Below are positions 18,661 through 54,926 of a stretch of DNA of 64,000 bases, piece by piece. Position numbers and translations under genes: made by a program. Numbering within the stretch: position 1 is the stretch's first letter; every line of letters starts with the position of its first letter. Below the pieces are notes generated by a model. The model had not been told where the DNA came from. It did no database searches and saw only the letters and a program-made list of their open reading frames with translations. Source of the DNA: Convolutriloba macropyga (lineage: Eukaryota); assembly GCF_964194025.1 (NCBI RefSeq), contig NC_134473.1, forward strand, positions 13,826,001-13,890,000, written 5' to 3'.

Positions 18661-18879
18661 TTGATTGCACTTGGTTCCAAACGCTATCTCGCTGTGCGAG
18701 ATCCACTTGGAAGCGAAAATTTTGTTGGTATCTGGAATAGCAATAGGCACTTCTCTCATCGTCAAGGGCGAATAATTTTTAAACATCGCACTTCTTCGCA
18801 CTTGCGGCTGATCACCGGCCAGTCCATAGGCCCGCTTGTAAATATACTCGTGAAGGGACATCTTTGATGGGTCTAACAT
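18661..18879 (-). CDS. DCAF12: DDB1- and CUL4-associated factor 12 (WD40), coding exon 1
   Basis: NKIFASKWISHSEIAFGTKCNQ resembles DCAF12 NKVFASQWL...GTKCN. gtaagc donor. The start ATG is uncertain (18879 or 18861). Confidence 0.85.
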
Positions 18880-21122
18880 ATACACAGGGACGGATCAAGG
18901 TAGGTTCTAGATGCGGGTTTCAGTGGCCCTTTTTCAGACCACAAAGTAATCGTCAAGATACAATCATTGTAAACAGACGCTTGATATGCGATCAAAGGTT
19001 CGATCACAGATCATCCATAACAATATCTGAAAACTGTTAATGATGAAAAACTTATCAACATAATTTTAAAGAAACAGCTGTCAGTCAAAAGGGGAAATTG
19101 TCAAATATCTTTGAACTACATAATGACAGACTTCAGGAAGTTGTGCGAACTTAATAATGTTGTGAAATGTCTGAATAAACTAGGATATGTACTTTAAAAA
19201 GAATCTAATGAGTCACTGAAAGTGAATTTTAAATTCAGTTTAAAAAAAGCTGAGCCCATTTTCAGCACCCGACACAGTCGCAACCTTCAATACTTTTCTT
19301 ATTTACTCCATAAAAAATGTCGAGGAATCATATGGGACAAAAATTGTCAATCAACCAACTCACAGCCTAATGCCTGATATTTCATGCTTACTACTAAGCT
19401 CTAACTATTTCGCCTGCGTGTAGGTTGTGAAGCTTCTTTGAGCAGAAGAGCAACTATTTTAAAAACCCAATTTTCACTAGTTATTGAATTAAAACGAGTG
19501 AAATTTAGGTAAGTGTCACAACAGACCGGTGCATAAAGCACATTTCCATGATCGTGCAAGAAGAACTGAACATCAAGCTTGCTTCTAGTCTTTGATTTTC
19601 AGCTATTAATTATTTAGCTACTAGCATTGATTGTAACAAAATTTTAACAAACTTTTTTGAACTTTAAAAAATTCTGCTCCTTTCCAAATTCTTGAATAAA
19701 TATGGCCACAGGAGCAGTAAAACAGTCTTCAACAAGGATGAATGCTTAGTTTTAAAAATTCAAACTTCAACAACATTGCTAGCAGATTGCTTAAAAATTT
19801 GGAAAGGACAAAAATTTGGCTTCATAGAACTGTAGTCTCAAAATACCAATGAAGTAAATAGGACCTAAATGTCCAAGACAAACAACTTTTGGTTATGTTC
19901 CAATCAAGGCCGTGATGTCTTAACCTTAGAACTGTTTCTAAAATCTGCTCTTAAATGACCTTCAAATAGAGTAAGATGTCCTCAGTTGACCTTTAAAGCA
20001 AGCTAAGTCATTTTGAAAGCGGCGCGGGGACAATTTTTTTTAATGCGCATGACCCAAAACAAGAGCAAAAATGACGTCACGCATGGAACTTATGAGGTGA
20101 CGGGTCACAGGTCTTAAAAAAATCTTGAAAATATAAAAAAACGCGAAGTCAATAGTAGCTCCACTCAGCTGCCTCCATTGCGGCTACTAAGAAGAACCCG
20201 CTTCGTTTCATTTAACACCGTTACACATTTTGTGTTCAATTCATTTGACACTCGAAAACTACAATATTAAAATCCATGCATTCAATCCTTTCTCGGCTTG
20301 GTTGACGCCGTATTGGCGGACGGCGTTTGGCCAAAAAAATAATGAGAAATTTTGCCGACAATTTAAGTAAAGTGAGCAATAAGATCAATTCTGAAGCCGT
20401 GATTTGCTAATTTAAAACAGTATTTCGCAAGCTGACAAATATAAGGAAGAGTTTTTATCAAACAGTAATGAAGGTCTTTCCATGGATGCACCCTCCCCCC
20501 GTAAGGTGCGGCCACGGCAAGTGGAGCTCCACCCGACCGCACATCAAAAGATAATGGTTCACCAAACTACTGATTTAATGGAACAATGAGATTTTTTAGA
20601 CCAATTATGATAAAACTGTCGGCTAAGTTTCTCTTTTTATAACAATTTTTCTATCACCCTCAGCTTACACAATAGTTACTAATAATGACCCCGTAGAGTA
20701 GCTAATAACGCTTTTGTTGACCCCAAACCCAAAACAACAGTCAGTAATTAAGTTATTCATAGCAATTTTCACAGGAAAAAAAAACAAACTATAAGGATCT
20801 CTGACGCCGCCTTATAAAAAAATATATACTATAATAATACAATATTTTGATGCAGTAAATCATTTCTGCATTCAATTTAGGGGGATAAAACATTCACGTT
20901 TGAAGTGATTAAAACACCACGAAGCCATAAAAACTATTGGGGGATCATCATAAGAACGGACCAGGACATAATAGATCCAATAATTAGTGGTCAAATCAAC
21001 TATCAACAAAGCAATTATAAAGAACTGCTAAGAAAGAAAACAAAACGATGGCCTACAGACAGCTCGAACACTAGCCACAATTGAAATCCTGCACTGCAAT
21101 GAGATTAAAACAAGCTAACAAA

Positions 21123-23015
21123 CATAGCCGGCAGATTGCCGCAATAGCTGCGAAAGGATAGACTTGTGTGTCGTATAATAGAGATAGAAACATAAAGATC
21201 TAAATTGAAAATATCGACGCCGCTCAAAAAGCAAAGAAAAAAAATTCAGCGATAAATTAATTAAGATTGTTAAAATTCATTGCGCAGAAGCCTTTTTATT
21301 ACAGACTTTTATTACACATATGAGTTCCTTTGACCTTAAAGTAATTCAAATTAAACTTAAGTTCTAAAGTGCAAATTGAGTGAGGTGAGTCACGAATGAT
21401 CAAAATCTTATCACGCAAATGACTTAAAAACGTTGGCTAAAGAGAGTGAGATATGACGCCACGCGCGCAATGCCATTAGTGAGAGGAAGAAGTCATTCAG
21501 AAAATCTGATTTTTTCAGCTTTGCTGTGTGAACAAATATAAAACGAAAAAGAGCGTCAGACGATGAAATAAAAAACATAGCAGGACAAGTCCTGACGCAC
21601 AATTCAATAATTGTCATTGACTAAACGAAAAAACCATTGGGAAAACGATTTCCAAAAAATATCAGATCAATTAAAAAAACAGAAAATCATGGTCAAAATG
21701 CCGCATGTGAACAAAAACCCACTAGCGAGAAAAATTTGGTTTAAAAAAACTACGCCTAGATTGAACTATGAATGGATTTGGAAAACAATTTTTAAAAAAA
21801 TTCGAGCCAAAAATCGAAAAAAAAATCAAAGTGAAATTGCTGCATGAGAACAAAAAAGCACTAGCGAGAAAGCGAACTTTTGTTCAAACATCGATTTTTT
21901 ACCCTACTTGAATATTCGAGTGAGAAAAAATTCACGCCGAAAAACCACTTGCTTTATCGCTCCACTTCCTATTTCGGCGTTACCAAAATCACTACTCCAA
22001 TTTGAAAATGTGTGAACAGATCTTAAAAAAACATAGCCGGAGGAATCCCGGAAAAGTCTCGAAGATAGCTTCGCCAAAAATCAGCCTGTCGAACATCTAG
22101 TTTCTGATCGCAGTGAGTATTAACGAAGCGAGAAGACTATGTTAATTTAATAAAAAAAAACAAAATTTAGTTAAAAATTAATTTAAACGAAAACAAAAAT
22201 TCAAACAATTTTTCAATTTGCACAAGTAAAAATACAGAGGGAAAACAATATTACAAGTACTAGCAAAAATTTAATTGCTCACACAAATTCGGACAATCCA
22301 AAAAAACAGAAAAACCTCTCTTGTTTTGAAAAAGCGAAGAACTAAGAAATTTTAAAATAATTTAACAATTGTTCGCAATTTTTTGTCAAATGCAAAGAAA
22401 TAAATTGCTTGGTACCAAAGAACCTATTTAATTTGTAATAAAAAATTCCCACAAGCATTAAGCTTGCATTCAAAAACGAGTAAAAGCAATACAATACAAA
22501 AATAGGCAAGAAATCGCTAAAATAGCCTTAAAACCGGAGAATTGGTTGAAAAACCTTCAAATTAGCGTAAAACTCCCTTTAACTAACAAAAAACTTAAGC
22601 AGTATCAAAACAATATTAAAACTATAACTTTAATCTGAAATAAACTCAGACAACAAATAAGTCTAAAAAAACGCTTAAAAAAGCCGCATGTGAACAAAAA
22701 AATTGCTCGCTTAGCGAAAATTTTTTCACACCTACATTTCTCGCTCTGTTTCAAAAGAAGGCATGAACAAAACAACCACTCTCTCTTTTCTCCGCTTTTC
22801 GAATTTGTTCACTGAAACAACTTTTACAAACTTTCTTCACTCCCTGAACTTCCGGTTTTCTTGCTCGCTCACTTATATATATAAAAAACAGAAAACCATA
22901 AAGCCTCTTCGAGTCTTAAAAAAGACAGCGCCCCAATGAAATTCAATTTCTTCGTATTGTAAAAATTCAAGAGCACCGCAATATAGCTCCGCTTAGCTTA
23001 CAGCCTCGCATCTAT
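21123..23015 (-). mobile_element. Three-level HINE nest: B-like (21123-23015), C (21576-22960), D (22032-22917)
   Basis: Three catag+hairpin ends followed by three matching closing ends in reverse order. Confidence 0.75.
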
Positions 23016-27633: not shown

Positions 27634-28897
27634 CATAGTAGTACAAATCCAGAAATACATTCCACAGAATTGAATGAAAAACTTTGAGCTACTGAACCTG
27701 ATCAGCAGACCAATTGAAGAATGCCAGCCAAAAAAACAATTTCCTGAGTTGAGAAATTAAAATTATCAAACAAACTAAAAACCACTGCTAAACTCTTGAA
27801 GCTATTACCCTAAATACCAAATCTATTTATCCTGTATTATCCATTTAACTACAACAAATAAAACACGCACGAAACCTTCAAAGAGGATTATTGGCCGATG
27901 AAGAAAAAGTTTCACCAGCTCAAAGACTAGTAAACACGTAACAGCATAAAACTACTCCGTTCCCCAAGCAACTATGAAGTAGCATACTATCAAACCCTGG
28001 AGGAGGTTCCCTGACCTCTGAGGCTGGAATAACACAGCAAATGACAACAATTTTCAATTAAATTGAAAAACATTGCGAAAATTAGTATCATTTTGAGTTT
28101 TCAAGTTTGCTGTACTAAAACGTTTAGCTCATAAAATTGTCAGAAAAGGTAAACATAACCGACTAACGTCGGGCGAATTGCTCTCAAACGACATCCGAGC
28201 AGTTGGCTTCGTCAGTAGCTAGCCAAGGGGGGGGGGTGCACCGGGGGCTGATGGGTGGGCAACACTGGGTTGGGGGGCAACAGCGCGGTGGGGGTGGAGG
28301 CAATAGTGGGGGTCAACAGGGGGGGGGGGGGGTGTCAACCTGGAAGAACCTCCCTTCACACCATAAGTATAAGTCTCCAAAACAGTTTGAGCTGAAACAG
28401 AGCGGAAAGGCTCTAAGAGCACTTAATGCCCGCTGGGCGCTACCTGTTTATCCCGTTTTTGAGGACGAAAAGTCAAAGCGTCAGACGAAAAATCGGTCAA
28501 GCGAAAAATCGCATAAAAAAAGACCGACAGGACTATTATAATTGCTATAAACTTCGTTTGAGAGCAATTAATTATGTCTTTGAAAAAACCTTTATCAAAT
28601 TTGACAAACGTCAACTCAAAACTAATTTTAAAAAAATTCGAAAAGTGGCAAAACGTGAATCGTGTCATTTTGGACTCAAAAACTCCGAAATTGACCTTTT
28701 AACCTTGGGCATTCCCAGAAGCTGCACTCCTCTAAGCCCTTGAAGGACAACTAAAGTCAGCTTTGGGCCTCTAATGAAACTTAATACCCACTGACCTCAC
28801 ATGCTTATCGGGTTTTGAAAGGTCACAGTCATGAAAAATGTGCGAAAACTTCGTACAAAAAAGACCGAGCACCAATACAATCCAATTCTTGGATTGT
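27634..28897 (-). mobile_element. HINE family E containing a G-rich family A copy (28154-28569)
   Basis: E closes with ccaatacaatccaattcttggattgt. A has hairpin ccgac-taac-gtcgg and subTIR aattgctctcaaacga/tcgtttgagagcaatt. Confidence 0.72.
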
Positions 28898-29468: not shown

Positions 29469-29485
29469 CTGAACATAAAAATTTG

Positions 29486-33368: not shown

Positions 33369-34136
<768 letters not shown>

Positions 34137-34476
34137 TTACGTTTACTAAACGCGGAAATTAGCAACAAATAATGGGTTCTGATTGTTTTAGTTGATGATT
34201 TTCTGTAACACGCTAAAGAAGAACCCGATATTGTCCATATTGAATTCTGCTTTAAGCATCATCACCATGTCTCAAAATGTATCAGGACTCCTCCGTTTTC
34301 CAAAATCTCAGATTAAGGCAAGCCGCTTCCGAACTTACATTCCTGCATATATAGGAAGCGCGTACAAAGCCGATATCTGAGAAAAGCAAAAGCCTAAAAA
34401 TAGCTCAGACGACTCGAACATACATTAAATGTCAGGTTTTCAAACGTAGTTAAATGTAGAGAAAGTTATAACTTAC

Positions 34477-34514
34477 CATAGCACGGCAAGCAATAGAACC
34501 GTGTATTTCATCAT
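34477..34514 (-). CDS. CTSD: Cathepsin D exon 1 (signal peptide MMKYTVLLLAVL)
   Basis: Hydrophobic signal peptide followed by a gtaagt donor (phase 2). It joins exon 2 as ...AVLCGLALADF. Confidence 0.85.
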
Positions 34515-35015
34515 GTTGAGAGTTAGAGAGAGAAACCAACCGCAAGTGAGGCAAGTTAAGTTGATAATAAGACAAATCGGATAATCAGCAAACTAGACAA
34601 ACATTATGGCCTCGTGACATTTGCACAAAGTTTTGTTCGCGTGTAATGAGATAACCAGATCGAAACAACACTCCCGTTCACTACAGCCCCAAATGGCTAC
34701 ATTTGTGACGAATTGTTTAAACAAATAATCAATCAAAATGTTCACAATACCATATACGATAAGGAATGCAGCAAATAAATACATGGCAAGCCCATCCATC
34801 GTAAATTTGAGATGCTTATAACATTCAATCCTACGATTGAACTCACCAACCATCATTTGAGTTCATCGAAACCTGCAGTGTAAATTTGAAATTTCCCACG
34901 TAAATAAACGATTTCTTTATTTAACTAGTTTCATGTTCAAGGTTTAAACTTCAATTTATAGCTGTAAACAAAGTTTTTCAGATATGTCAAGAACTCACGA
35001 TTGATAAGGATAAAC

Positions 35016-35498
35016 CTAAGCTGTCCATTTCAGACATCTAGTATCTTTATGCATCTGTTGGCAATCTAAGCTGCAGAATTTGAAACCGCATTGAACACAG
35101 TTGTATGCTGACGGGAATCCACAAACGGAGCAGAGCTTTTTAGCGGGTTTCTTGCTAGGTGGCGCTATACATGTAAAATAATTTGGTGATTCTCTTTCAA
35201 GCGCCGCCTCCTCTTCAACCAAGTTTTGCAACGTCTTTCTAAATCTTTGTTTAAAATGATCGCCACGAATTTTCCGTTTTCGTCCTTTGGCAGACTTAGA
35301 TTTGTCCTCCTGACCTTCAACATGTAACATCTTTTTGTTGATAAAGATTAAGTTGGCATGTGGGTCTTCTTGAAAGTTGTCCTTTTCCAACGAGTCCAGG
35401 TGTCGTTCCAGCCTCCTCTCTCTGGATATGTTGTCCAAAATTTTCTTTTCATTAACAATTTTTTGACGTTCACTTTCTCTCGCAACAACAACAGACAT
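35016..35498 (-). CDS. ZNHIT1: Zinc finger HIT domain protein 1 (Vps71/SRCAP-SWR1 subunit), 160 aa
   Basis: LEKDNFQEDPHA, HFKQRFRKT, and the HIT finger CSVCGFPSAYNCVQCGFKFCSLDCQQMHKDTRCLKW. The first ATG is at 35498; the ORF-track start at 35522 is a TTG. Confidence 0.93.
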   Translation of the reverse strand: MSVVVARESERQKIVNEKKILDNISRERRLERHLDSLEKDNFQEDPHANLIFINKKMLHVEGQEDKSKSAKGRKRKIRGDHFKQRFRKTLQNLVEEEAALERESPNYFTCIAPPSKKPAKKLCSVCGFPSAYNCVQCGFKFCSLDCQQMHKDTRCLKWTA

Positions 35499-35705
35499 TT
35501 TATCCTGAAATTTGCCCAACAATATAATACCAATTACTCTCTAAACTAAGGGACACATTCAGGAACACAAACTTGTTAAATTCTGGCAGAAAGCCGAACG
35601 CTACATAAATATAGCAAGAGATTTCAAAAATAAGTTCATTTCAAATTCAAACACCGGCCGCTATTTATAATAAATTGTTTAATAAAACTTACGAGTAAAA
35701 AAGAA

Positions 35706-36088
35706 CATAACCGACTAACGTCGGGCGAATTGCTCTCAAACGACCGGTTAGCTTCGTCAGTAGCTAGCCACGGGGGGGGGGGGGGGGGCTGGGCAACCGT
35801 GGGGCTGTCGCGCGGGGGGCAACAGCTTGGGGGGGGGGGGGCTCTTCAAGAACCGTCCTTCACACAATAACTAAGTCTCCAAAACAGCTTCTGTGAATCG
35901 CATACTTCGAGTACTTGGAGACTAGTGCGCTGAAAGGCTATAAGGGCACTTAATGCCCTCTACCTGTTTATCCCGTTTTTGTGGACGAAAAGTCAATTGG
36001 GTCAGACGAAAAAACTCAAGCGAAAAATCGCATTAAAAAAGACCGACAGGACTGATATAATTGCTAAAAACTTTGATTGAGAGCAATT
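35706..36088 (-). mobile_element. HINE family A (G-tract subtype)
   Basis: cataaccgactaacgtcgggcgaattgctctcaaacga at one end and ttgagagcaatt at the other. Homologous to 28154-28569, 13507-13948, ~15570-15916 and 49686-50057. Confidence 0.8.
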
Positions 36089-37759: not shown

Positions 37760-37809
37760 AAAAATATCTTATACTGTCTTTTAAGACTTATAAGATATTG
37801 TAAAAAAAG

Positions 37810-40829: not shown

Positions 40830-42720
40830 TAACCTTTCTTCATTTTAAAAAGTATCGCAACCTTGTAAATCGAAAGTTAAAAGAAGCACAAAATCAATTT
40901 TCAGAGGATTTTTTAAGAAAATTGAAACCTCGAAAGAGAAAGGGAAATTCATTAAGAAAAATATTGGAAAAAAACAACAGTCCAAAAATCACTGAAATTG
41001 ATTGAAATGGTAAAAAAAAACGAAAGACAAAAAATCAATATGTAACGCTTTTAACAGAGTTTTCAGCGAAATGGGCATCTACAGAGGGCAGATTGTTCCA
41101 CCGAACGTCGAAAAAATAGAGCGGACACTTCATGAGTTTAACTTTAGACCTTTTACTTTGAGGCAAATCTATAAAGTTATTGACAATCTAGACAACAACA
41201 AAGCACCAGGGCCGGGACATCAATGCTTGGGCATTGAAATCCGGAAAATAAGCTATTAGGACACATCTTCAGATTATATTTAACGATTGTATTCAAGAGA
41301 AAGTTTTTCCAACAATTCTTAAGGATGCACACATCACCAATTTTCAAAAAAGGAGATGTTTCTGTTTCAACTAATTATCGTCCAATTTCGTAACACCAAC
41401 TTTCGCAAAAGTTTTTAAGAGACTTTTACTTAATCAGTTAGTAGAAAATCTTGAAAAATTGCGCTTTTGAACAGAAAACAATACAGTTTTCAATCCGGAA
41501 AGTCGTCTACTGATGCTGTGCTTTATTTTATTGAAAAATTTACTTTATTGAAATCTTTCCATGAGATCTTTCTCAAGAAAGCTGAAATTTCAACCTCTCT
41601 CAATCAACAATTTTACTTTTCAAATCTTTTCTCGCAAATCGAACGAAATGCGTAAAACTGGGTAGGGTATTGACTTATCAGATAAAAAACTATTAATCAT
41701 GGTGTTCCACAAGGAACTGTGTTAAAACCTCTTATTTTTCTGTTATATGACATCGATTTTTCTGAAAAACTTGAAGGTGAAAATGATTTTATTCAGTTTG
41801 CGGATGACACTAGTATTATACGCAAATTTGAACGTAATGAAAACATTCCACAGAAAAATGAAAAATTATTAGAACAAACAGACAACGATCCAACAGAGAA
41901 TCAACTCACTTTAAATGCCGATAAAACATGTTATTCTTTACAAACCATAATAATTCGGATCCAGAGTTTTCCTTTAAAGGCCAAGTTATCAAACCAGCTC
42001 ATGCTTGTCGTTGTCTGGGAGTACAAATTGATTCAAACCTAACCTTTGAAAATCACCAGAAATCAGTTTTAAGCAGAATGGCTAATTGAAATCGTTCTTT
42101 CTATCTCGTAAGAAATCAAATTCCTTTGAAAGTAAGAATTGATGTTTTCAAGTCAGTTGTACTCTCTCATTAAAAAATCAAATTCTTTTAAAAGTAAGAA
42201 TTGATGTTTTCAAGTAATTTGTACTCTGTCATTTTTCTTTCAGTGGAGTATTCTTTAAAACTCGTACAGTGAAAAACATAAACCGCATAACAGGCAAATA
42301 AACTGGGGAATAAAAGTTTTGTTATTTTCAACAAAAATTTGACCACTCTATTGATCTTCTCATTAAGGATCGTATCCTGCCAGCCGAATTGTTTCTCAGA
42401 AGTTAGACTAAGGAAACTACAAACATATATAAGACACTGGGAAACATCCGAAAATTTTAAAATGTTTACTAGTCGCCATAACGCTAGACAGAACAAGAGA
42501 ACAAATCAAATTATTATGAAAAAGAAACCGAAATGGAGTTACAAATCTTTAAACTTGAAAAGCGTTCAAATATGGAACAAATTGCCCTCCTCAATAAGAA
42601 CTTTTAATAGTAAAACTTGCTTTAAAAATGCTAAATGTTTTAACCGAGTATTTGCTCGATCAACACAAGGTGCCCGTTAATTGACAAATAGGAGCCTTCA
42701 AATCCTATTTTTTCCTACGA
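40830..42720 (+). mobile_element. 5'-truncated, frameshifted LINE (CR1/L2/Jockey-like) reverse transcriptase region
   Basis: Motifs in order: KAPGPG, NYRP, QYSFQSGKSSTDA, GVPQGTVLKPLIFLLY, FADDT, QLTLNADKT, WNKLP. Confidence 0.85.
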
Positions 42721-42867
42721 GAACAAACAGCCACAATTTGAAGATTATATTAATAACAATGCCGATTAATTTATTTAACATTTGAAAGCATGTAGATATC
42801 TAACCTTAGGGTTATATTCTGAGTAATTTACATGTTTCGAAAAAAACACTTAATGACATTGATAAAA

Positions 42868-44512
42868 CATAACCAACGCATGTCGGGCAGATTGCTCTCC
42901 ATTGTTTCTACTGGACCTGGGGAGGGAATGGAAGCAGAGCATAATATAGGCTTATGAAGGCTTTTCAATTGTTGTTGTTAGTAATTATATTGTCCAATAG
43001 TGAGATTCAAAATAAAAAGCACCAATTTCGGCGCGCAGTTCAATTGAAGTTTAGTAGTATACTGACGGCACTAGAGCTAAACTGCTCAAAATTGTGGAGG
43101 AGCAACTTATATGACCCAAAAATTAAGAACTCAAGCATGGCAAAAGTCACAGCGGTCAAACACAAATTTTGCATTAAAAAGAAGGGGCTCCGCAGCATTC
43201 AGTCCGAACCAATTTGGTTGCTCAAAAAATGAGGGCGGCGGATGATCATTTCCACATCAATTTTCAAAGAATCAGATTTAAACTCTAGACTCACGTTTCC
43301 CAGATGCAAGAAAAAACTTGGTGCGGAAATCTTAAAAATAGCGAGCATTGGTGTGAAAAACGCAAAAAAGCACTAAATTCGACGTGAGGACACTGCTTCA
43401 AAACCGCGAACTCCAGGATAGCAACAAACTTCAATTCGGAGTAAGAGCAATGCAATTAAAATCACTCAAAATTAAAAAGCGAGGCGTGAAAAAGTAACTT
43501 GAGAAATAACAGAATGTTCTAGAACAAGAGCGCAAAAACAGTCAAGTGAAAACTAAGATTGCCCGAAAATAGTCGCAATAGACGCTTGAGGCCTTCCATG
43601 AAATGAATTACTAAAGAAAGGAGATAGAGATTGACCACCAGTACTTTAATAGACCACTAGACTTTTTGATTAGATTCCGACTGTCATTTTTATGAGATAC
43701 ATACGCTCTATAAAAAGCCCTAAGAGCTTTTTCAAAATTAATATTCGAAACCAAAACTCAAGACTCTAATACCCGAGAATTTGGGCATGTACGTTTGACA
43801 CCTCTTAGATGCACACTTTTGATCTTTAACTAGTAAATGTTCATAAAATTTAAAGTTCATTAAGTGAGTTGAGAAATCATTTTTTTAGTGAGGTAAGTCA
43901 CGCAAATGACCTAAAAGCAGAACAAATGACGTTAAGCAAACAAAATTTAACTGCAAAGCAGTAGCAGTCACTGACATTGAAAAAGTCAACGGTCGCAAGA
44001 ATCATCGATGGAGACGAATTAAAGAAAACCACCATGTCCCCAATAATAGCCGCTATCGCTTCGCGGCTATTAATAAAAAAACACATGTAAAATAATTGCT
44101 TTAAAACTGCCTTCGAGAGCAATTAAAACCATAAAACGACTAACGTCGGATGAATTGCTCTGGAACGACAATCAACTTCATTTAGAGGAGCATGTACCTT
44201 AGAAATGTGTTGTGGGTGCAAACTAACTCCATCCCACAGGGGTTTGAAACTGGGACCTCCATGATGCCATTCCAACATCTTAGCCACTAAGCTACAATGG
44301 CTTTTACACTCACAATCAGTTTTATAGTAGCAACAATCTTTATTTCAGAAATCGAGCAACTTAAAGGCCACTCTAAAATGAACTCAAGCGTGAAAAACTC
44401 ACTCAAGTCACAGAATGTTCTAGAACAAAAGCGCAAAAACGGTCACGCAAAAATTCTGTATAAAAACACGCACGTTTACAATAAATGCTTCAAACGTCGT
44501 TCAAGAGCAATT
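42868..44512 (-). mobile_element. Two head-to-tail family A HINEs (42868-44124, containing B2 at ~43555-44071; and 44130-44512, with a tRNA-like cassette)
   Basis: Family A ends at both positions, and the B2 body matches 10355-10800. Confidence 0.7.
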
Positions 44513-44802
44513 AAAACCGTGCAAAATGCCGATAGAAACCCAATACCCACCTTTGCTTAGTAAGAACATTGATGAGACAAATAATATCCCTATGCTTCGT
44601 CATGTTCGTGAAAGAGCGCAGTACGACTAATTGCGCAACTCCCCCTTACATGAAAAAATAAACCTGAGTTACTAAGCCAACTGATTCGTACAATTTAACA
44701 ACATTGAATTGGAGAGCATGTGAACTTGCACTTTCATACTTCTCTACAGAAAGCAACATCCTATAACAATATCAAGCACAGATCAATTTGTCCACTATTA
44801 CA

Positions 44803-45669
44803 CTAAGCGTTGAGCGCCATTGTCAGCAGTTTATCTTGAACAGAGATCTGGTTTTCAATCAACTTCGATAAATACAACACCATAAGATTATCCTTGAGAT
44901 CTCTGTTAATCGTCTCTTTGAATTGCTCTGGCTTGATTTGAGGCAAATTCATGATCAACTCTGTCAGCATTCTACCAACATGACTGTCTCCACTTTTGTT
45001 ACCAGCCATCACTGCCTCAACATACATTATAAGCTGATCCAATCTGCTCAGAATCGACTCACAACTGTTCTTTATCAAGTCTATGTCACTCAATGCAGGC
45101 ACAACTCTTTCTTTCTGAACTATGCCCTGCTTGAATATCTCAATAGCTGAAGTATCGGCTGAATGTTGCACTACATTAAGAGGGACTGGATTGAAGATAT
45201 GACCTAGGGTCTGTTTTGGAACGCCCATTGGTGAGCTAATAAACGCTTTAACATCAATCCGCCTGTTGATTTTAGATATCGTCTCGACTAAGACATGAAC
45301 AGGAGCTTTAACACATGCTCCAGTATAGAATTCGTGGATCAATAACGAGTGCTCATTGATTGCATTGCCAGTAGCGAACCACCCGACAATGGTTCCAGAG
45401 GTGTTGGCCTTCTTATGCAGTTCGAACATTCTGTGAGCTGCAAGTTTATCAACAGCAACTTCATCATCTGTCTCTTTATGAGGGACCATGAAACAAGCGT
45501 TAACTTCGATTACGCCTCCAGCATCGTGGGTTCCGAGAAGCGTACCCATGACCCTCTGGTCGTTTGCATTTCGCCTTTCGTAGAAGTCGAGAATGCTGAA
45601 GATGACATCTAGCTTGATATTGACATACTTGATGCCAGTAGCAGTCCCTGAGTCCTTGTTTGAACTCAT
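44803..45669 (-). CDS. EIF3F: Eukaryotic translation initiation factor 3 subunit F (MPN domain), single-exon CDS, 288 aa
   Basis: Motifs VIFSILDFYERR, RVMGTLLG, CFMVPHKE, IVGWFATG, SLLIHEFY and a C-terminal DNLMVLYLSKL are typical of eIF3f. Confidence 0.93.
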   Translation of the reverse strand: MSSNKDSGTATGIKYVNIKLDVIFSILDFYERRNANDQRVMGTLLGTHDAGGVIEVNACFMVPHKETDDEVAVDKLAAHRMFELHKKANTSGTIVGWFATGNAINEHSLLIHEFYTGACVKAPVHVLVETISKINRRIDVKAFISSPMGVPKQTLGHIFNPVPLNVVQHSADTSAIEIFKQGIVQKERVVPALSDIDLIKNSCESILSRLDQLIMYVEAVMAGNKSGDSHVGRMLTELIMNLPQIKPEQFKETINRDLKDNLMVLYLSKLIENQISVQDKLLTMALNA

Positions 45670-46030
45670 TTCTTATCTTAAAGCAAATACTTTTTAATAA
45701 AATAAGCTCCCCAGTGAGTAAGACAATTTCACTTTCCCAAAAGGAAAAAATATTTGTAGCGAGGTTCAAAAAGAGTTACGAGTTATATTTGAGTGTTCAA
45801 AGGAAGTTCTTAACATTCCGCCATGATTTCTAGTATGACCAAGTCCATGTCCATCTCAATAACCGCTGGGACTCATTTCCGCGAAATTGGACCAAAATTG
45901 AAGCTAGTTAAAGTTAAATTAAATCAAAACTTATTTGAAATCATTTTTACATTTGCAAAATTTAGCGCACTCATATCATGGGGGGTAAGGATAATTACAC
46001 TGGGCTACAGCTAATATACATGACAGTCTT

Positions 46031-46697
46031 CTATCCATACGCATTTGAGTTTCGAAAAATTGACGGGTCGGGGTCGTCTAAATCCTCGTAATTTGGAACC
46101 CTTGGGGAAGCCGAAGCACCGGGACCTGACTGAGGGGCACTGTTTGCGTCATCCAGTGGTTTCCGACAAACTGGACAGGCATTGTGAAGTTTTAACCAGG
46201 GCTCAATGCACTCTTTGTGAAACAAATGGCCACATGGAAGGCACTTGACAGTTTCATTAAGAGAGAACTTATCTTGACAGACGCTGCAGTCACTTTCTGC
46301 TTTTACATGATCAGAGTTGATAACCACAGACCCTATGGAGTCAATTGTGGTTTGACTGCAGGGAGGGGGACCTCCTCCTTCAAGCTGGTCCATCATTTGT
46401 GTTAATATCGCATCCAAGCCACCTGGACCCCAGGCATAGTCTTGCGGATTGCCATTGACAGTGACAACGTTAAAGGGAGGATGCAACATGAGCCCGTCTA
46501 TGAGTCTGTGCAGTGCGTCGTTTGAAAGGGGCATTCCCTGAGGCAGAGCAGTGGGAGTGCTCAGCATAGTCATGTCCTCGTTTGAGTCAAACACGATGCT
46601 GTGTGGAGTAGCCGGCATTCTTGGGTGACGTCGAGGACGACGGTGTGGTCTGCTAGAACTACTCCCCTGTTGAGTTGTGGTCGATGTCCCGTTTCCT
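46031..46697 (-). CDS. RNF126: RNF126/RNF115-like E3 ligase, coding exon 2 (RING-H2)
   Basis: Contains GNPQDYAWGPGGLDAILTQMM and the RING-H2 CSVC...CGHLFHKECIEPWLKLHNACPVC. Acceptor tggtttag at 46698 is phase 2. The joined CDS is 352 aa. Confidence 0.9.
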
Positions 46698-49685
46698 CTA
46701 AACCAGGTAAACAAAAGTTTGCATTGACAATATTCAACTGTCAAACGCTGATTCATCCAGATAATGGCGCATAATTTTACATCATAAGATTTTAACTCTC
46801 AGTAAAGGAGTTCTCTGCTCATATTAATTATAAAAACAGACCATCTGATTGACCCGACTCCTATCATTCAATTGCTCCATCGTCAGCTCTACTGACATGA
46901 ATGTCGACAATTAGAAAATTTAAAAATTTTTTTGGAAGATATGCAGTTAGTGGCGAAACTAAAAACATCAGGTAAAACAGACCAATGATTACTAAAAAGT
47001 ACTAGATAATGTTTTATCCAGAACACTAAAATTCGTCAATTTAAAATTCCAAATTTGCGATCTCCGCCTCGATTTTCCTATCAAACTTTCCTAGAGTAAT
47101 AGAACAGAAATATAAATGTGACCTATTGCCTTTATAAAAAGACGTAACTCAATGTATTATCAAAACACAACACTTGATTGGCTTAAAGGCTCACCATTAA
47201 CTCTACTAGTTGTTCCGACTCCACTTGTGGGGGGAGAAACTATATACTCAAATGGGTTTTTTTTTGTTCAGACAATTTTGGTCGATCGATATACTCATCG
47301 TAGAGAAATTAAGTGGTATCATTAAAAAGCTCGCCCAGTGTAGAAATCGAAATTAAAGGGATTATTTTCAATTTCGCATTTCTTGAGGAGCTATCGAGGA
47401 TTGCAGTTTTGTGTGAACACCGCATACGCATATTTGGCATGATTTTGTTCACTTTTAGTGTAATTTTTTTCTTCAAATAATCAATTTTTTTAATTTAAAT
47501 ATAAATTCAAAATTACATTTCAAACCACAAAATGAATCAATTTTGTGTTCCTAATAGACAAAAGGCAATAAAAAAGACTAGTTCTGGTCTCATAAGAAAG
47601 TTTACAATAAAAAAATTGAATTCTATCTGAAAGCTTTTTTTTAAATAAAACTTTTCATTTCTTTGTTTTCTTAGGTCACCTAGAAACTAGTCACTTTTCA
47701 TATCAAGCTTCCGGTAATGACGAACCCTAATTACGGTCAAATGAAGCCCAATGAACAAAACATTCGTTTTCAAGGAATCACTCAGTTATCGTAATTTAAA
47801 ATGAAATTTTGATTTTCTTTTTGAGGTTTTACTAAATTTTCGGAGTCTTATGGCATTCACTGACTCGTTGACCAAAACTGCATTAAGCTCCGTAATGAGC
47901 ATTAAAGGAACCTATCTAGTGCTTTGAGTGGACAGCTGATGGCTGTTAAGTCTTTGAAAATAAATTCTCGAAATTTTTTTTAACATTGATCAATCATAAA
48001 CCTATTTGCGTGAACTTTGAGTCAGTCACAGTAATGACAGGATCCCCTTTATTCCTACTGCAACCAAAACGAATCAGTTTATCGGTTTTATCTTCTAGTT
48101 ATTGGTTTTATGACTTCGAAGCCAAAAGATTTTTTAAAAAATTTTAAAATTTTTTTGGTATTTTTGATTCCCGTTGAAATCTTAACACATTATCCTTATA
48201 TTGATAGCTCCAACTGGCTTAGACATTCAATGGATTGAAGATAAATTTTTCAGATAAAAGGTTAAGTTTTAAATGGCTTCGACAGTTTCTCGCACTTTTC
48301 TACTGAATTTTTGGTTTTTGCCTGTATTTGATGATGTTTTCGTAGTCAATAGTCTTATTGTGATGCCTTATTGATTACTTATGCACGAAAAACATCCTTA
48401 TCCTCCCAATGAGGAATAACCGAGCGTATTTACTAAATTCCGTTGAAAGCTATTAAATTTAATGGCTGTTAAGACTTTGAAAATAATTTTTCAAAAAATT
48501 TTTGAACATTAACCGAATTTAATTTTTTTTGGTGAACTGTGCTTCTGTCTCTGTAATGACAGGATCCCCTTAATTCATACTGCAACCATAATTAGTATAA
48601 ATTAGTATAAATTGAAGGAAAAATATATAGTATTCGGATAATAGCTAATGATTTTATTGGCTTCAATAATTTGTGCTTTCGCAAATTGTTTAAAATTTTT
48701 TGAGTTTTTCCGCATTTTTAGTCTCTTCCTATGGCTTAGTCTAACCGAAGACAGGCCGTATTAGCTTCATAATAAATTTTTTATTAAATTTATTAAGAAT
48801 TATTTTGTTAAAAACTAATGTTTTTAACGACTTTAAAAATTATTTGGTTTACAAAATGTTGATTGATTTTTGAATTTCGACTCATTATTTCTTCTTTTGT
48901 CGATTTGTTACCTAGTCTCATTAAGGAAAATTTCCATCTCCTGTATAGTTGGGAATAATTATATTTGAGGTTTTATCCGATTAAATTTTGACGTTGTTAC
49001 TACGTGCTTTTAAATTTAGGTATTTAGTTTTTGCCGTAAAATTCTTTTTTGCTTATCTTGCTGTTTGTTTTTTATCTTAGTTTTTGTAATTACAGATCTC
49101 GTGAGCGCTGTATTGAGGTCTGGCATTATGTAATTCACTTAGTTAGGTTTTGTAACGATTTTTTTTCAACTCAAACATCTATTTTTGTTATCTCTTCATT
49201 TGGTTGACAATTAAGGCAAAAATGTACATGAGCTCGGGTCGAAACATAATGTGCGAACGCACATTAGCGAGCCTCCTTGTTTTTCTATTATCCTTTATGG
49301 ATTGCTGCTGTGGTTATGCGCTCAGCTATTAGAAGACTGAGCTGTCGGACAAATTATCTTTCTAATAAAGATTTTTTCTGATCGTGAGTTTGCTAAAAAC
49401 TTTGTGTTTTGCTGAGATTTTTATTCAATTTTATGGAACCAACTGAGCTGCAGAGAGCAGGTGAAAAGCAGTACCTTAATATATCAGTTATGCTATACAT
49501 AATTTTACAAAACATTTTTCAACCAGTCGAATTCCAGCATCACCATATGCAATAAAAAAAGAAATGAGTCCACGTATTTAGTACTATCCGTTGAGCGCTG
49601 AAAATCAACCACAAAATTAGATTTCAGCCGAGTAGGATTAAAAATAAGAACAGAAAACTTTCCACCGGGAACAAATTTATAACAA

Positions 49686-52467
49686 GCGATGGGTTGGGAG
49701 AAGGGTCGAGGGGGGGGGGGCAAATAAATCGCTAAATCGCCGGATGGAGGGTGATCGGGGGAGTATTGGGGGGTTGACCGGGGTGGGGGTTAAACTTTTA
49801 AGATTAAGAACCACCCTTCACGCTATCAAATCGTCTTCTCAAAACAGTTTTGGTGAACCGCATACATAGAGACTATTAAAGCGTAATGTTCTAGGAAAGC
49901 TACTGAACCACTTCATGTCCTCCTTCTTTACCTGTTTTTCCCGCTTTTGAGGACAAAAAGTTGAAAGGGTCAGACGAAAAATTGTTCGCGTGAAAAATTT
50001 CATCAAACAAGACCTCAGGACCAATAAAATTGCTACAAATTTCTTTTGATAGCAATTAGTTAATCAAATGAAACGAACAAATATAGAAGTAGCAGGAGAT
50101 TCGTTGCCTGTCTGGCTTAGTTAGACAGAAAATACAAAAATAAAAATTCATAGCCAAAGGTCGCTCGAAATAAGGTCAACAGCAGCCTCAAACACTATAT
50201 TAACAAAAAATAAAGAAGGGAAGAGTCGAGCAGGAAGTAGAAAGCACAAATCTGTATGACTACTATTTACGAGTTGCATAAAAAATAGACAAAATTGGAC
50301 GGCTGTCGGCATGTAGAAGACTCAAAGTCACAACCTCATCCTTGAGAGAGATGGAAAGAACTAATTAATTAAATATTTGGAAGGAAATGAAAAGTCACCA
50401 CTTAAGAAGAAAATAAGCTTGGAAGCGTTAGGGAAAAAATACAAATCCACAACAAAACAATCATTAAACGTCGCACTAATTATCTCGTACGCCTGGTGGT
50501 GGGAAAGGTTGGCTTTCATAGTATGTAAGTACAAGTTTTGAGAAGAAGTCAAAATCGTACGACAAAAATTCTCTTAAAAAAGACCACAAGGACTCAAATA
50601 CTGCTTCAAAATTTCAAATTTTGTTTGAAGAACAATAAAAATAATAACCAATGGTTAGCTTCTTTAGAGGAAACAAACGAATCGAAAAAGAAATACCAAA
50701 AAATCTTCAGATACTGGAGTAAATTAGCAAGAGAATCCCAAGGGACAAGCTCAAAATTGCAGGAAAGCAGAAATAGGGATCGGAGACAGCAATAAGAGAA
50801 CGAATTGATCACATTGAAGATGGGAGTAAAGATAACGGATGACATAAAGAACGAATGGAAATGTCACAGAAACGAAAGAAAGATCGAAGTAATAGAGTGC
50901 TATCAATGCAGACAGATTTTAACGTCGGTAACAGTCCTGCCAACGCACACCGTGTGGTTCAACACAAGACCAAGAAGTACAGAGGGAGCAAAAAGTGAAC
51001 TACGTTTTAGAAGAAAACCAACCCTAACAATAAAATGAGCTGCAGACAAAACGCAACCAAAGAGCTACAGAGAGCGGCGATGGGTTGGGAGAAGGGTTGA
51101 GGGGGGGGGGGCAAATAAATCGCTAAATCGCCGGATGGAGGGTGATCGGGGGAGTATTGGGGGGTTGACCGGGGTGGGGGTTAAATTTTTAAGATTAAGA
51201 ACCACCCTTCACGCTATCAAATCGTCTTCTCAAAACAGTTTTGGTGAATCGCATACATAGAGACTATTAAAGCGCAATGTTCTAGGAAAGCTACTGAACC
51301 ACTTCATGTCCTCCTTCTTTACCTGTTTTTCCCGCTTTTGAGGACAAAAAGTTGAAAGGGTCAGACGAAAAATTGTTCGCGTGAAAAATTTCATTAAACA
51401 AGACCTCAGGACCAATAAAATTGCTACAAATTTCTTTTGATAGCAATTAGTTAATCAAATGAAACGAACAAATATAGAAGTAGCAGGAGATTCGTTGCCT
51501 GTCTGGCTTAGTTAGACAGAAAATACAAAAATAAAAATTCATAGCCAAAGGTCGCTCGAAATAAGGTCAACAGCAGCCTCAAACACTATATTAACAAAAA
51601 ATAAAGAAGGGAAGAGTCGAGCAGGAAGTAGAAAGCACAAATCTGTATGACTACTATTTACGAGTTGCATAAAAAATAGACAAAATTGGACGGCTGTCGG
51701 CATGTAGAAGACTCAAAGTCACAACCTCATCCTTGAGAGAGATGGAAAGAACTAATTAATTAAATATTTGGAAGGAAATGAAAAGTCACCACTTAAGAAG
51801 AAAATAAGCTTGGAAGCGTTAGGGAAAAAATACAAATCCACAACAAAACAATCATTAAACGTCGCACTAATTATCTCGTACGCCTGGTGGTGGGAAAGGT
51901 TGGCTTTCATAGTATGTAAGTACAAGTTTTGAGAAGAAGTCAAAATCGTACGACAAAAATTCTCTTAAAAAAGACCACAAGGACTCAAATACTGCTTCAA
52001 AATTTCAAATTTTGTTTGAAGAACAATAAAAATAATAACCAATGGTTAGCTTCTTTAGAGGAAACAAACGAATCGAAAAAGAAATACCAAAAAATCTTCA
52101 GATACTGGAGTAAATTAGCAAGAGAATCCCAAGGGACAAGCTCAAAATTGCAGGAAAGCAGAAATAGGGATCGGAGACAGCAATAAGAGAACGAATTGAT
52201 CACATTGAAGATGGGAGTAAAGATAACGGATGACATAAAGAACGAATGGAAATGTCACAGAAACGAAAGAAAGATCGAAGTAATAGAGTGCTATCAATGC
52301 AGACAGATTTTAACGTCGGTAACAGTCCTGCCAACGCACACCATGTGGTTCAACACAAGACCAAGAAGTACAGAGGGAGCAAAAAGTGAACTACGTTTTA
52401 GAAGAAAACCAACCCTAACAATAAAATGAGCTGCAGACAAAACGCAACCAAAGAGCTACAGAGAGCG
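49686..52467. repeat. Tandem duplication, 2 x 1391 bp, inside the RNF126 intron
   Basis: Identical ORF-track entries are offset by 1391, with few substitutions. Confidence 0.95.
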
Positions 52468-54115
52468 GCAAGTGGTGCTTTGAGCAAGGTCAAATGAGCT
52501 GCCTGTTAAAGCTCACACAGAAATGTTAGCATAGCAACTTCAGATCGGCAGTTATCAGAGCCGCCGTGCTGATCACAAAACAATCTCTTCAACCAGTTTT
52601 CGTTCCATGAGACCGACACTAAATGATACTTATAGGGACCGTGTGAAACTACACACCAACAAAAAAAGAGCAATTACATTGCAAAGAATACAAAAATGCG
52701 CTCAATAGCATCCAGCGACACACGGTCCATACTCAGTTGAACAAAGACAGCATGCAAAAAGCCACATCTCCCCCAGAAGATAGCAGAAAAACAAACGCTG
52801 CCATGAAATGCAAGTATCCGATTAGCACAACTGAGAACTGGATTCTGCCCCCTGCTAAACTCTCACGAGTAGATCTGTAACATTGTTGATAACCGCAGTC
52901 CCAAATGTGAAGTAGCACCACATTCTCAACTGCAGTAAGAACACCACGGATCTGAAAGTGATTGGCCTGTGTGAAAGACCAATAGAGGTAGCTAACTGGC
53001 TGGACTTAATACCGTCAGTCCAACACAATCACACTGCACATAATTCTCCGCCTTCCTTGCCCCTTTTCCCCCGATGTTGTCGATGCCCCTTCTGTCCCCC
53101 CTAACTCGGGGACGGTATGTCATTCACCATGGCGTAGATGCAGAAAGGACGCCGCACTACAAGCAAGTTGTGGATAAGCAGTCACACTACTACTAATAAC
53201 TATTTTTATCATGATACAAATGCAACTAAGGTACCAGTTAAAAACGGCAATAAGCGCCGTGTCCCGCCAAAACTACCGGCGATTGCAGATCTGTGCTACA
53301 GCTGCAACAACGGCAAGGTGAGATCAGATCAACATTGACTTGAACAAATGAATTGAACATTGACGACAACGATCACTTTTTACAAAAAACGATTGAGATA
53401 AAAAAAAAGCCAAGCCCGGAGCAAAACGATTTTTTTCTGCAATAAACATATTACAATCAATGCAAGCATACGATTTCGGTCAGAAACTTGTTTGTACTTA
53501 GATACTTGATTTACGCAACTTGAGCATCCCGACTTCTCAAACTTTTAAGATCCTATACAAAATGTCAGCATAAATAAACAAAACTATAAATTGAAGAGGA
53601 AAATTTTTTCTCACAAAATTGGGGTGAGTCAAAATCCACAAAAATTATGAGACAATTTGTGCATCAGCAAAAAACCTATGAGCTCAGCAAGATTCCAGCA
53701 AGTTCCAGTTCAAATTTTTAGAAGTAAGCTGTTTAAAATTATATAAGATCCTTTGAAAGACCGAGAGGATTCGATATGAAACTGATAGCCAAAATTCAGG
53801 AATTGGGAAAATTCTAAAAAGGGAACATATAAATTTTATGCGTTTATGGTTTGAAATACTTCAAGCCAATAATTTGGATAATTGTTTCTGGTTCATCCTC
53901 AATAAACGCAGCTTTTGTTTGTTAATTGAGCACTGGAAAATAATTAACAATAATTTTGTTTATAAAATTCAGCTTGCTTCAGAATTAATACTCTGTATAT
54001 CTTTTTTCTTTTCTCCAGAACTCGAATTAGACATTAGAAAGAACGGAACTCTCGATTTTGTTGTTAATACTTAAACAATGTTCGAGAACCTTTTTTGCTA
54101 AACGAATTGACAAAC

Positions 54116-54507
54116 CCTGATTGTGCCCCCGTTGAACTCGGTCCAGGCATTACGTGATCAATTTCATCGGCCATTTGTGTCGCCTGACCATTTGTGCTGG
54201 GAGACGTTTCTTGCGGTGTGTCTAACGTCGAATTACTGCCCATATCAGTTGCACCAAAACCAGGCAGGAATGCGCTTATCAGTGAGAAGACATCATTCTG
54301 GTAGTCAAGTGCGTGTTGGTTTAACTGTGAATCTTCTGCTTCGAACTCTCCCTCATTTTCGCCATTAACTTCCTCAATAAACGATCCGTTACATGTGGGA
54401 CAAATTAATGTATCTGGACTGATTGGATCAATAAACGCTCGACATTCATGACAAAAATATCTGGTCTCCATCCCATCAGGAAGGCCATTGATTAAGCGGG
54501 TACTCAT
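54116..54507 (-). CDS. RNF126: RNF126/RNF115-like E3 ubiquitin ligase, coding exon 1 (N-terminal C2-C2 zinc finger)
   Basis: MSTRLING...YFCHECRAFI...LICPTCNGSFIEE matches the RNF115/126 N-terminal zinc ribbon. Donor GG|gtttgt at 54116 (phase 2) is in frame with the exon starting at 46697. Confidence 0.85.
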
Positions 54508-54926
54508 GACGATAAAGTTCTTTCGATGATTGTGGCTCCAATTCAGTTAAGTTTCTGAAAACAAACACAAGAGGATTTTTCACATTCAAAAAAAGGTAAA
54601 TAAATTAAGAAATGCCCCTCCCCAACACTTTCACATTCATGACTACTTTGGTTCATGTGTGAATTTAAAATCATATGACAGTATACTCTAAAAGGACGTT
54701 CGTACGATTTGTTAGCAGAAGTATGATACTAATAATAAAACCGAACTTAGTGTTAGCACCAGGGGAGGTTAGTTCCATTGATCCAAGTTTCATAGTAAAT
54801 AGTTTCATTTTATATGGCGACGGCACCAGTGTTGGAGAGTCCCTTGTAAATATATAAAAAGGACCGTGTACACCTCATCTGACTGCTATTGGAGGACTGA
54901 GCTTCAACTCCAACAGCAAACCCCTC

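Follow-up and report, generated by a model that had tools for sequence, protein, structure and literature searches.

The window analysed here, a stretch of 64,000 nucleotides from the acoel Convolutriloba macropyga, carries five housekeeping genes in the order RNF126, EIF3F, ZNHIT1, CTSD and DCAF12, all of them on the minus strand (Table 1). These identities had been proposed in a preliminary description of the locus made from its letters, and they proved right when checked exon by exon, with exons never joined; all were settled by matches to Pfam and PDB. Equally exact were the two short spacers that it had reported, of 361 nt between the RNF126 stop and the EIF3F ATG (46030-45670) and of 501 nt between the ZNHIT1 stop and the CTSD ATG (35015-34515).

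Gene structures and spacers of the cluster

EIF3F matched the PDB eIF3f entry with an E-value of 4e-61, the runner-up being PSMD7 (1e-15), and ZNHIT1 matched its human counterpart with an E-value of 3e-45 in an alignment starting at residue 5. The N-terminal zinc finger of RNF126 matched PDB 2n9o (RNF126). For this gene, the putative donor of exon 1 (agg/gtttgt, after 54116) was placed by reading frame and the GT-AG rule only, and the predicted acceptor of the last exon reads ggtttag/a. The RNF126 intron contains a tandem duplication of 1.39 kb (49686-52469). The last exon of CTSD (24285-23998) matched cathepsin D with an E-value of 7e-33; a GTAAGT-ended micro-exon of 38 nt (34376-34339) was left outside the main CDS because it brings an in-frame TGA once joined to exon 1. 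DCAF12 was recognized by PF23760 matches within 18885-18553 and 11855-11571, and the area of its leader (18700-19800) is single copy. No opposite-strand genes were found between the five.

Table 1. Positions of the genes, splice motifs, poly(A) hexamers and repeats discussed in the text, numbered from the first nucleotide of the window.
Feature	Position	Strand	Remarks
TATAAAAT	54814		upstream of RNF126 acceptor
ttgttttcag, candidate SL acceptor, RNF126	54564-54555	-	47 nt before ATG, strong pyrimidine tract
RNF126 coding exon 1, ATG 54507	54507-54116	-	Zn_ribbon_19, E 6e-11
RNF126 intron, ~7.4 kb, repeat-bearing	54115-46698	-	DNA-run depth in thousands from 47100 up
RNF126 last coding exon, RING-H2, stop TAG 46033-46031	46697-46031	-	zf-RING_2, E 1e-14
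ATTAAA, only canonical poly(A) hexamer after RNF126 stop	45698-45693	-	starts 21 nt before EIF3F acceptor G
tttgctttaag, best candidate SL acceptor, EIF3F	45687-45677	-	7 nt before ATG
EIF3F intronless CDS, single exon, 288 aa	45669-44803	-	single copy in genome
EIF3F-ZNHIT1 gap, 9.3 kb, transposon-rich	44802-35513	-	many repeats
High-copy DNA in EIF3F-ZNHIT1 gap	42500-42899, 43500-44699		DNA-run depth
Reverse-transcriptase fragment in EIF3F-ZNHIT1 gap	~41719-42042
GTAAGT, candidate cis donor of ZNHIT1 5'-UTR intron	35692-35687	-	187 nt upstream of acceptor
aatttcag acceptor, ZNHIT1	35512-35505	-	6 nt before ATG
ZNHIT1 intronless CDS, single exon, 160 aa	35498-35016	-	single copy
AATAAA in ZNHIT1-CTSD spacer	34921-34916	-
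CTSD (cathepsin D-like), several exons	34514-23998	-	Asp-family exons
CTSD exon 1, signal peptide, donor GTAAGT	34514-34477	-	exon 2 starts 34110
AATAAA after CTSD last exon	23967	-
GTGAGT, plausible cis donor, DCAF12	19363	-	336 nt upstream of acceptor
gttttcag acceptor, DCAF12 leader	19034-19027	-	147 nt before ATG 18879
DCAF12 first coding exon (open frame), ATG 18879	18879-18553	-	remainder toward window start

Both short spacers are free of repeats, as had been described: no intra-window repeat falls in either of them, whereas such repeats make up 35% of the window overall. Whole-genome searches with 45670-46760, 34880-35520 and 34380-34900 returned self-matches only. In four sequencing runs, recognizable as DNA by their half-depth alleles and by a depth that stays even across exon, spacer and intron, the depth is that of single-copy DNA from 44700 to 47099 but rises to thousands on both flanks. 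The same runs showed no alternative letters in the RNF126-EIF3F spacer, and eight at half depth (heterozygous) at 46310-46637, in the last exon of RNF126. At 361 nt, this spacer is large enough for a compact promoter. An ORF of 87 aa in the ZNHIT1-CTSD spacer (34856-34593) was considered as a sixth gene and discarded, with no match in Pfam or in the Atlas. The pairs separated by 361 and 501 nt have the adjacency expected of an operon, which is lacking at the 9.3-kb EIF3F-ZNHIT1 gap and at the CTSD-DCAF12 gap of 5.1 kb, where some repeats are found.

Spliced leader and acceptors before the start codons

The preliminary description had placed the locus in a setting of spliced-leader (SL) trans-splicing, which was correct for this acoel, in whose genome we found a family of SL RNA genes. 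We probed the whole genome for exact matches to the 22-mer at the 3' end of the leader published for S. roscoffensis (PMC9911081) and obtained 3,744 occurrences versus 95 for the control. About 1,277 of these sites are followed by GT and correspond to SL RNA genes. Most of these stand in arrays on contig C9 (23.1-23.7 Mb), and they take the form of a 31-nt exon and GTAAGT, with a stem that pairs with the donor, an Sm-like AGUUUUAUUUGA and a hairpin. The genome carries the machinery for SL trans-splicing. It also holds more than 2,000 "fossil" copies of leader-headed RNAs, in which the leader is usually followed by the ATG after 2-15 nt; among the 48 of these sites that were read, about 17 distinct families have an ATG 2-21 nt after the leader, with a median of about 8.

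The acceptor-like motifs reported before four of the starts were located exactly, ending at 54555, 45677, 35505 and 19027, that is 47, 7, 6 and 147 nt before the ATGs of RNF126, EIF3F, ZNHIT1 and DCAF12, respectively. Judged by their letters, the candidate acceptors of EIF3F and ZNHIT1 match the leader-to-ATG spacing of the fossils. No good acceptor closely precedes the ATG of CTSD; the sole nearby AG is a weak gtctag that ends at 34593, 78 nt upstream. The chance level was estimated from TTT(C/A)AG motifs ending upstream of all ATGs on the minus strand, and such a motif was found within 10 nt of 1.8% of the background ATGs, within 50 nt of 6.8% and within 150 nt of 19.8%. An acceptor at no more than 10 nt in two of the five starts (EIF3F and ZNHIT1) is therefore above chance (p ~0.003), whereas the motifs of RNF126 (p ~0.07 by position alone) and DCAF12 are individually within it. 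No ATG intervenes in the 47 nt between the RNF126 acceptor and the start, and the nearest GTAAG-type donors lie 628 and 1286 nt upstream of that acceptor.

At EIF3F, the claim that no strong donor precedes the acceptor was upheld and extended, GTRAGT and GTAAG being absent within 1.5 kb of it, spacer included. The acceptor AG is directly followed by an in-frame TAA, so that it begins a 5' UTR and not a coding exon. This acceptor ends in AAG; CAG and TAG are stronger. EIF3F is the only one of the starts for which an acceptor unpaired by an upstream cis donor was established; ZNHIT1 and DCAF12 both have plausible cis donors.

A second gene pair of this genome, DSD1-PHF5A, showed on re-measurement a layout like that of EIF3F, with the stop followed by 183 nt, tttcag, 6 nt and the ATG. 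A genome search for fossil cDNAs, in the form of retrocopies, showed that EIF3F, ZNHIT1 and the stretch made up of the last RNF126 exon and the spacer each occur in single copy. The idea that EIF3F and ZNHIT1 arose as retrogenes, with the remains of a leader before the ATG, was rejected when the leader was aligned locally with the 70 nucleotides preceding each start (p = 0.16 and 0.32); the corresponding value for RNF126, p = 0.03, loses its significance once five tests are allowed for. Relatives of EIF3F with gene context were sought in metagenomes, and none was found.

RNF126-EIF3F as a candidate dicistronic operon

According to the preliminary description, at least RNF126 and EIF3F, and perhaps ZNHIT1, might be polycistronic. 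This suggestion is plausible for the first pair, which has a dicistronic anatomy, but less so for the extension to ZNHIT1, which would require transcription across the transposon-rich gap of 9.3 kb. We regard RNF126-EIF3F as a plausible dicistronic operon, with a confidence that stops a little short of even. More tentative is the full claim of a true operon in which poly(A) cleavage and leader addition would lie about 20 nt apart and EIF3F, which has no introns, would rely entirely on the promoter of RNF126. ZNHIT1-CTSD may be a second candidate pair, a weaker one.

The steps that we infer, namely co-transcription, the RNF126 poly(A) site and leader use at these acceptors, would run as follows. 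A single promoter upstream of RNF126 would most likely give rise to a dicistronic RNF126-EIF3F precursor, in which the 3' end of RNF126 would be formed after the ATTAAA at 45698, a putative poly(A) signal. About 20 nt past the hexamer, the leader would most probably be joined to EIF3F at the AG that ends at 45677 and precedes the ATG by 7 nt, leaving almost no intercistronic region between the two genes. The acceptors of ZNHIT1 (35505) and RNF126 (54555) probably receive the leader as well. Downstream, EIF3F itself shows no canonical poly(A) hexamer for 458 nt. A general rule by which a hexamer would precede the acceptor by about 20 nt was discarded, as it fails at DSD1-PHF5A, whose spacer has no canonical hexamer; the hexamer spacing at RNF126-EIF3F is thus a locus-specific hint only.

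The genes could also be trans-spliced and yet monocistronic, each with its own compact promoter and with the leader replacing a short outron, in which case the short spacers would be compact promoter regions that transposons missed or could not enter; we hold this to be a real but doubtful possibility. In Ciona and Oikopleura, each with a single leader, many monocistronic genes receive it (PMC7986045), so that an acceptor alone is no proof of an operon, and about 30% of the genes of S. roscoffensis are trans-spliced with no operons reported there (PMC9911081). TATA-like boxes precede the acceptors of ZNHIT1 and RNF126 by 164 and 259 nt, respectively, the variant-free spacer suits a promoter as well as processing signals, and five genes share one strand by chance in 1 of 16 cases. 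However, a stop-to-start distance of 361 nt is extreme for a genome of 1.18 Gb in which the other gaps of this cluster measure 5-9 kb, and these 361 nt would have to fit the 3' UTR and poly(A) site of RNF126 together with an entire promoter. With the only canonical hexamer placed 21 nt ahead of the acceptor of EIF3F, there is no space for a promoter downstream of it.

Ordinary cis-splicing, in which the acceptors would end 5'-UTR introns whose donors belong to non-coding exons further upstream, without participation of a leader, appears improbable. The preliminary description had named this alternative, and it remains applicable to ZNHIT1 and DCAF12, which have plausible donors (187 and 336 nt upstream of their acceptors), but not to EIF3F, which has none within 1.5 kb and whose 5' exon would have to lie within the 361-nt spacer or in RNF126. 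GTAAGT occurs nine times on the minus strand, so that the chance of one falling within 200 nt of the ZNHIT1 acceptor is about 3%. A dispersed repeat (35781-35697) ends immediately before this donor, and the 5' exon of ZNHIT1 would therefore be repeat-derived. It would also suit cis-splicing that the motifs of RNF126 and DCAF12 are within chance and that, in the related species, 70% of the genes lack trans-splicing (PMC9911081); the acceptor-ATG distances of 6-7 nt, which match the fossil leader spacing, speak against it.

That all five genes form one operon of about 36 kb, with one promoter upstream of RNF126 and long gaps that are short intercistronic regions swollen by transposons, is very unlikely: the shared orientation with no opposite-strand gene found in between, the repeats of the long gaps and a sense-strand T excess that runs on from the introns through both gaps would agree with it, but CTSD has no acceptor near its ATG, that of DCAF12 lies 147 nt from its ATG, is separated from it by short upstream ORFs and may be paired with a cis donor, the AATAAA near the stops of ZNHIT1 and CTSD would terminate transcripts, the T excess is also present upstream of RNF126 and so has no internal control within the window, and two of the four gaps, the transposon-rich one of 9.3 kb and that of 5.1 kb, leave a single operon of five genes unsupported.

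Relation to known operon systems

Operons resolved by SL trans-splicing are known from nematodes, tunicates, flatworms, chaetognaths and a few other groups, and it is debated whether they had many origins or reflect an old bilaterian capacity. The position of acoels among bilaterians is itself contested and possibly very deep. To our knowledge, leader trans-splicing has been published for one acoel and an operon for none, and a literature search found no paper linking operons, trans-splicing and Xenacoelomorpha. If verified, the dicistronic RNF126-EIF3F operon, which would have no intercistronic region, would add a phylum and bear on how easily operons evolve once a leader is given. Taken alone, this pair is one more candidate at the sequence level; if it is true, together with other candidates in the genome such as DSD1-PHF5A, SL-resolved operons would be regular in a phylum without a published one. 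The C. macropyga genome has had no annotation so far, and pipelines blind to trans-splicing would fuse such genes or misplace their starts.

The closest studied relative is S. roscoffensis, in which 30.2% of the genes are trans-spliced and operons are nowhere mentioned (PMC9911081). Its leader (PMC9911081) is essentially identical over 31 nt to that of C. macropyga, where the 22-mer is exact in thousands of copies, and the SL RNA gene of C. macropyga has a canonical fold.

With the SL2-type operons of C. elegans, the RNF126-EIF3F pair shares co-oriented, functionally unrelated housekeeping genes and an acceptor that stands unpaired shortly before the ATG of the downstream gene. Their intercistronic regions measure about 100 nt (PMC7986045); here the value would be about 0 or up to about 330 nt, according to where the poly(A) site of RNF126 really lies. 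C. macropyga showed a single leader sequence, so that, unlike in SL2-type operons, downstream genes would bear no SL2-like mark.

In the operons of Ciona and the SL1-type operons of C. elegans, which use a single leader (or SL1) and are mostly dicistronic, the upstream poly(A) site adjoins the downstream trans-splice acceptor, and hardly any intercistronic sequence separates the two (PMC7986045). Both kinds of site are RNA-mapped in those operons, whereas the sites of C. macropyga are predicted from its genome, and the DSD1-PHF5A pair differs from them in having no canonical hexamer. It is this type that the candidate RNF126-EIF3F operon resembles, with its ATTAAA 21 nt before the EIF3F acceptor.

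Layout of the five-gene cluster

Gene identities were checked by reference on single exons rather than on joined (spliced) proteins. These exon-by-exon matches bore out the preliminary description, which had named RNF126, EIF3F, ZNHIT1, CTSD and DCAF12, in transcription order, and placed all five on the minus strand, a co-orientation that random strands would give once in 16. The next family matched by the EIF3F exon was PSMD7 (E 1e-15), and the ATG of ZNHIT1 is the true start because the alignment to human ZNHIT1 begins at residue 5. For RNF126, we inferred a frame-consistent GT-AG junction joining 54116 to 46697.

Exons of the five genes and other features of the window
Feature	Position	Strand	Description
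RNF126 first exon	ATG 54507	-	Zn_ribbon_19
RNF126 last exon	stop TAG 46033-46031	-	RING-H2
EIF3F	45669-44803	-	single exon; PDB eIF3f E 4e-61
ZNHIT1	35498-35016	-	single exon; human ZNHIT1 E 3e-45, alignment from residue 5
CTSD first exon	starts 34514	-	38-nt signal-peptide exon, GTAAGT at its end
CTSD later exons	resumes 34110; last exon 24285-23998	-	cathepsin D E 7e-33 on last exon
DCAF12	start 18879	-	PF23760
Tandem duplication in RNF126 intron	49686-52469		near-identical, unit about 1.39 kb
Tandem duplication upstream of RNF126	56252-63468		near-identical, unit about 3.49 kb
ORF of 87 aa	34593-34856	-	ATG-initiated, one hydrophobic helix; middle of ZNHIT1-CTSD spacer
38-nt segment	34339-34376	-	between ttttctcag and GTAAGT, within CTSD intron 1

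The 3' splice sites (acceptors) named in the preliminary description at 54555, 45677, 35505 and 19027 were exact, as were the lengths it gave for the RNF126-EIF3F (361 nt) and ZNHIT1-CTSD (501 nt) spacers; it gave neither the EIF3F-ZNHIT1 distance (9.3 kb, rich in repeats) nor the CTSD-DCAF12 distance (5.1 kb, with repeats present too). Both short spacers, said to be free of transposable elements, were indeed repeat-free by DNA depth, genome searches and intra-window comparison: sequence repeated within the window made up 35% of it but no part of either spacer, and each spacer sequence, searched against the whole genome, matched itself only. In the four sequencing runs covering the locus, which are DNA reads, 44700-47099 was at single-copy depth, with depths in the thousands on both flanks. 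The observation of a five-gene cluster with acceptors and short spacers is real.

The window (C6:13826001-13890000) belongs to an assembly of 1,175,981,408 bases; the published genome note of this acoel gives 1,175.98 Mb and 3.65% heterozygosity, the genome being not yet annotated. The ORFs in the two tandem duplications had no Pfam matches. Non-coding DNA showed a marked T excess on the minus (gene) strand window-wide (AT skew on the plus strand between +0.06 and +0.24), in introns as well as in the two long gaps and in the 9 kb that precede RNF126, coding exons having the opposite sign; transcription, repeat orientation or regional composition may each be its cause.

Spliced leader of C. macropyga and its genomic copies

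The spliced leader (SL) of Symsagittifera roscoffensis has been published (PMC9911081). Its 3' 22-mer occurred 3,744 times in the C. macropyga genome, compared with 95 times for the reversed control. At 1,277 of the 3,744 sites the leader was followed by GT, mostly in large arrays on contig C9 (23.1-23.7 Mb). Very large tandem arrays at C9:23.13-23.75 Mb (e.g., L025:1489-1620) lie in both orientations and have periods of about 1.06-2 kb. The C9 copies comprise, in order, the 31-nt leader, GTAAGT, a stem pairing the donor region with the leader, an Sm-like AGUUUUAUUUGA and a hairpin, the layout of a canonical SL RNA gene.

More than 2,000 other copies (examples being L001-L008 and L026-L065), in which the leader is followed by diverse sequence, not GT, and often by repeat families, are DNA copies of leader-carrying RNAs. 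Some leader-headed copies carry two stacked leaders. In L001 (minus strand, around 1460-1620) and L015 (minus strand, 1455-1530) these are separated by a few tens of bases, with one of them decayed in L001, and record repeated trans-splicing and retro-copying like that described in dinoflagellate genes. One family occurred in two forms, with the leader joined either to AGATGAGCC or to TTTCAG AGATGAGCC, which suggests the use of tandem alternative acceptors. Two tandem arrays on contig C2, L009 (C2:15835300-15837700, 955-nt period) and L010 (C2:76712200-76717000, 2.18-kb period), bear a leader copy at the start of each unit, with no GT donor; they are not SL RNA genes but leader-headed retrocopies that have been amplified.

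Leader-headed copies (n = 48) served as fossil cDNAs: in about 17 distinct families, 2-21 nt (median about 8) separated the leader from the first ATG. Leader acceptors in this animal therefore typically lie a few bases upstream of the start codon. The spacing at EIF3F (7 nt) and ZNHIT1 (6 nt) is exactly this pattern. PHF5A of the same genome is alike: in the same-strand pair DSD1-PHF5A, re-measured here, the DSD1 stop is followed by 183 nt, tttcag, 6 nt and the PHF5A ATG. TTT[C/A]AG ended within 10, 50 and 150 nt upstream of 1.8%, 6.8% and 19.8% of minus-strand ATG triplets, respectively. With an acceptor within 10 nt at two of the five gene starts (p about 0.003), the arrangement at EIF3F and ZNHIT1 is beyond chance; the motifs of RNF126 (47 nt) and DCAF12 (147 nt) are not individually significant.

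Acceptors of ZNHIT1, CTSD and DCAF12

Three readings of the ZNHIT1 acceptor are possible. It may close a cis 5'-UTR intron, for which a GTAAGT, one of only nine on the minus strand of the window, is available 187 nt upstream; it may end a short outron from the gene's own promoter; or it may be reached by through-transcription. This GTAAGT adjoins the terminus of a dispersed repeat, whose copy ends 5 nt before it, and TATAAATA is found 164 nt before the acceptor. The repeat, present in three minus-strand copies in gene orientation (35697-35781, 13497-13581 and 28151-28574), contains a conserved 60-nt core (GTCGTTTGAGAGCAATTCGCCCGACGTTAGTCGGTTATGTT) as well as a C-rich tract; the core was also seen beside a leader copy in L010, in reverse orientation.

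CTSD had no acceptor close to its ATG, the sole candidate being gtctag 78 nt upstream, and a canonical AATAAA lies 94 nt after the ZNHIT1 stop; the putative co-transcription of ZNHIT1 and CTSD is doubtful. The 87-aa ORF between them is probably due to chance, since it had no match in Pfam or Atlas; ctgcag lies 20 nt upstream of its start codon and about 48 nt downstream of the AATAAA. The 38-nt segment in CTSD intron 1 was rejected as a coding exon because its inclusion creates an in-frame TGA, and is either a decoy or a non-productive alternative exon.

Short upstream ORFs lie between the DCAF12 acceptor and the ATG, and GTGAGT is found in single-copy sequence 336 nt upstream of that acceptor; trans-splicing is no more likely here than an ordinary 5'-UTR intron. 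The proposal of an operon resolved by SL trans-splicing was reasonable given its setting in a trans-splicing acoel. A single operon of all five genes is very improbable.

RNF126-EIF3F as a candidate operon

EIF3F is the strongest case among the five genes. Its acceptor can only open a 5' UTR, because an in-frame TAA follows it. The spacer had been described as lacking a strong donor, and no GTRAGT or GTAAG was found in the 1.5 kb upstream of the acceptor. EIF3F is predicted with good confidence to receive the leader by trans-splicing. RNF126 itself has a strong acceptor, and the region upstream of it, about 240-460 nt of unique sequence followed by repeats, is compatible with a promoter and outron.

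In the DNA runs, eight half-depth alternative letters (heterozygous sites) clustered at 46310-46637, where the last exon of RNF126 is of low complexity, whereas none was reported in the adjoining 703 nt (RING domain and spacer). The absence of variants from the spacer, against eight over the 330 nt of RNF126 coding sequence beside it, suggests constraint, with the reservation that the reads reflect a single clonal culture. Whole-genome searches revealed no retrocopies of EIF3F, ZNHIT1 or RNF126, and no relatives of EIF3F with gene context were found in a metagenome scan.

RNF126-EIF3F is a candidate dicistronic operon, to which we give slightly less than an even chance. No report of operons in Xenacoelomorpha was found in the literature searched, and the five-gene locus is a further, unproven candidate of a known kind. 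Downstream of the RNF126 stop there is a single canonical poly(A) hexamer, ATTAAA at 45698, which precedes the EIF3F acceptor AG by 21 nt. Its use is made less certain by the lack of a canonical hexamer in the DSD1-PHF5A spacer and for 458 nt after the end of EIF3F. If it were used, the RNF126 cleavage site would coincide with the EIF3F trans-splice site, and the pair would resemble the operons of Ciona and the SL1-type operons of C. elegans, in which the upstream cleavage site and the downstream trans-splice site coincide (PMC7986045).
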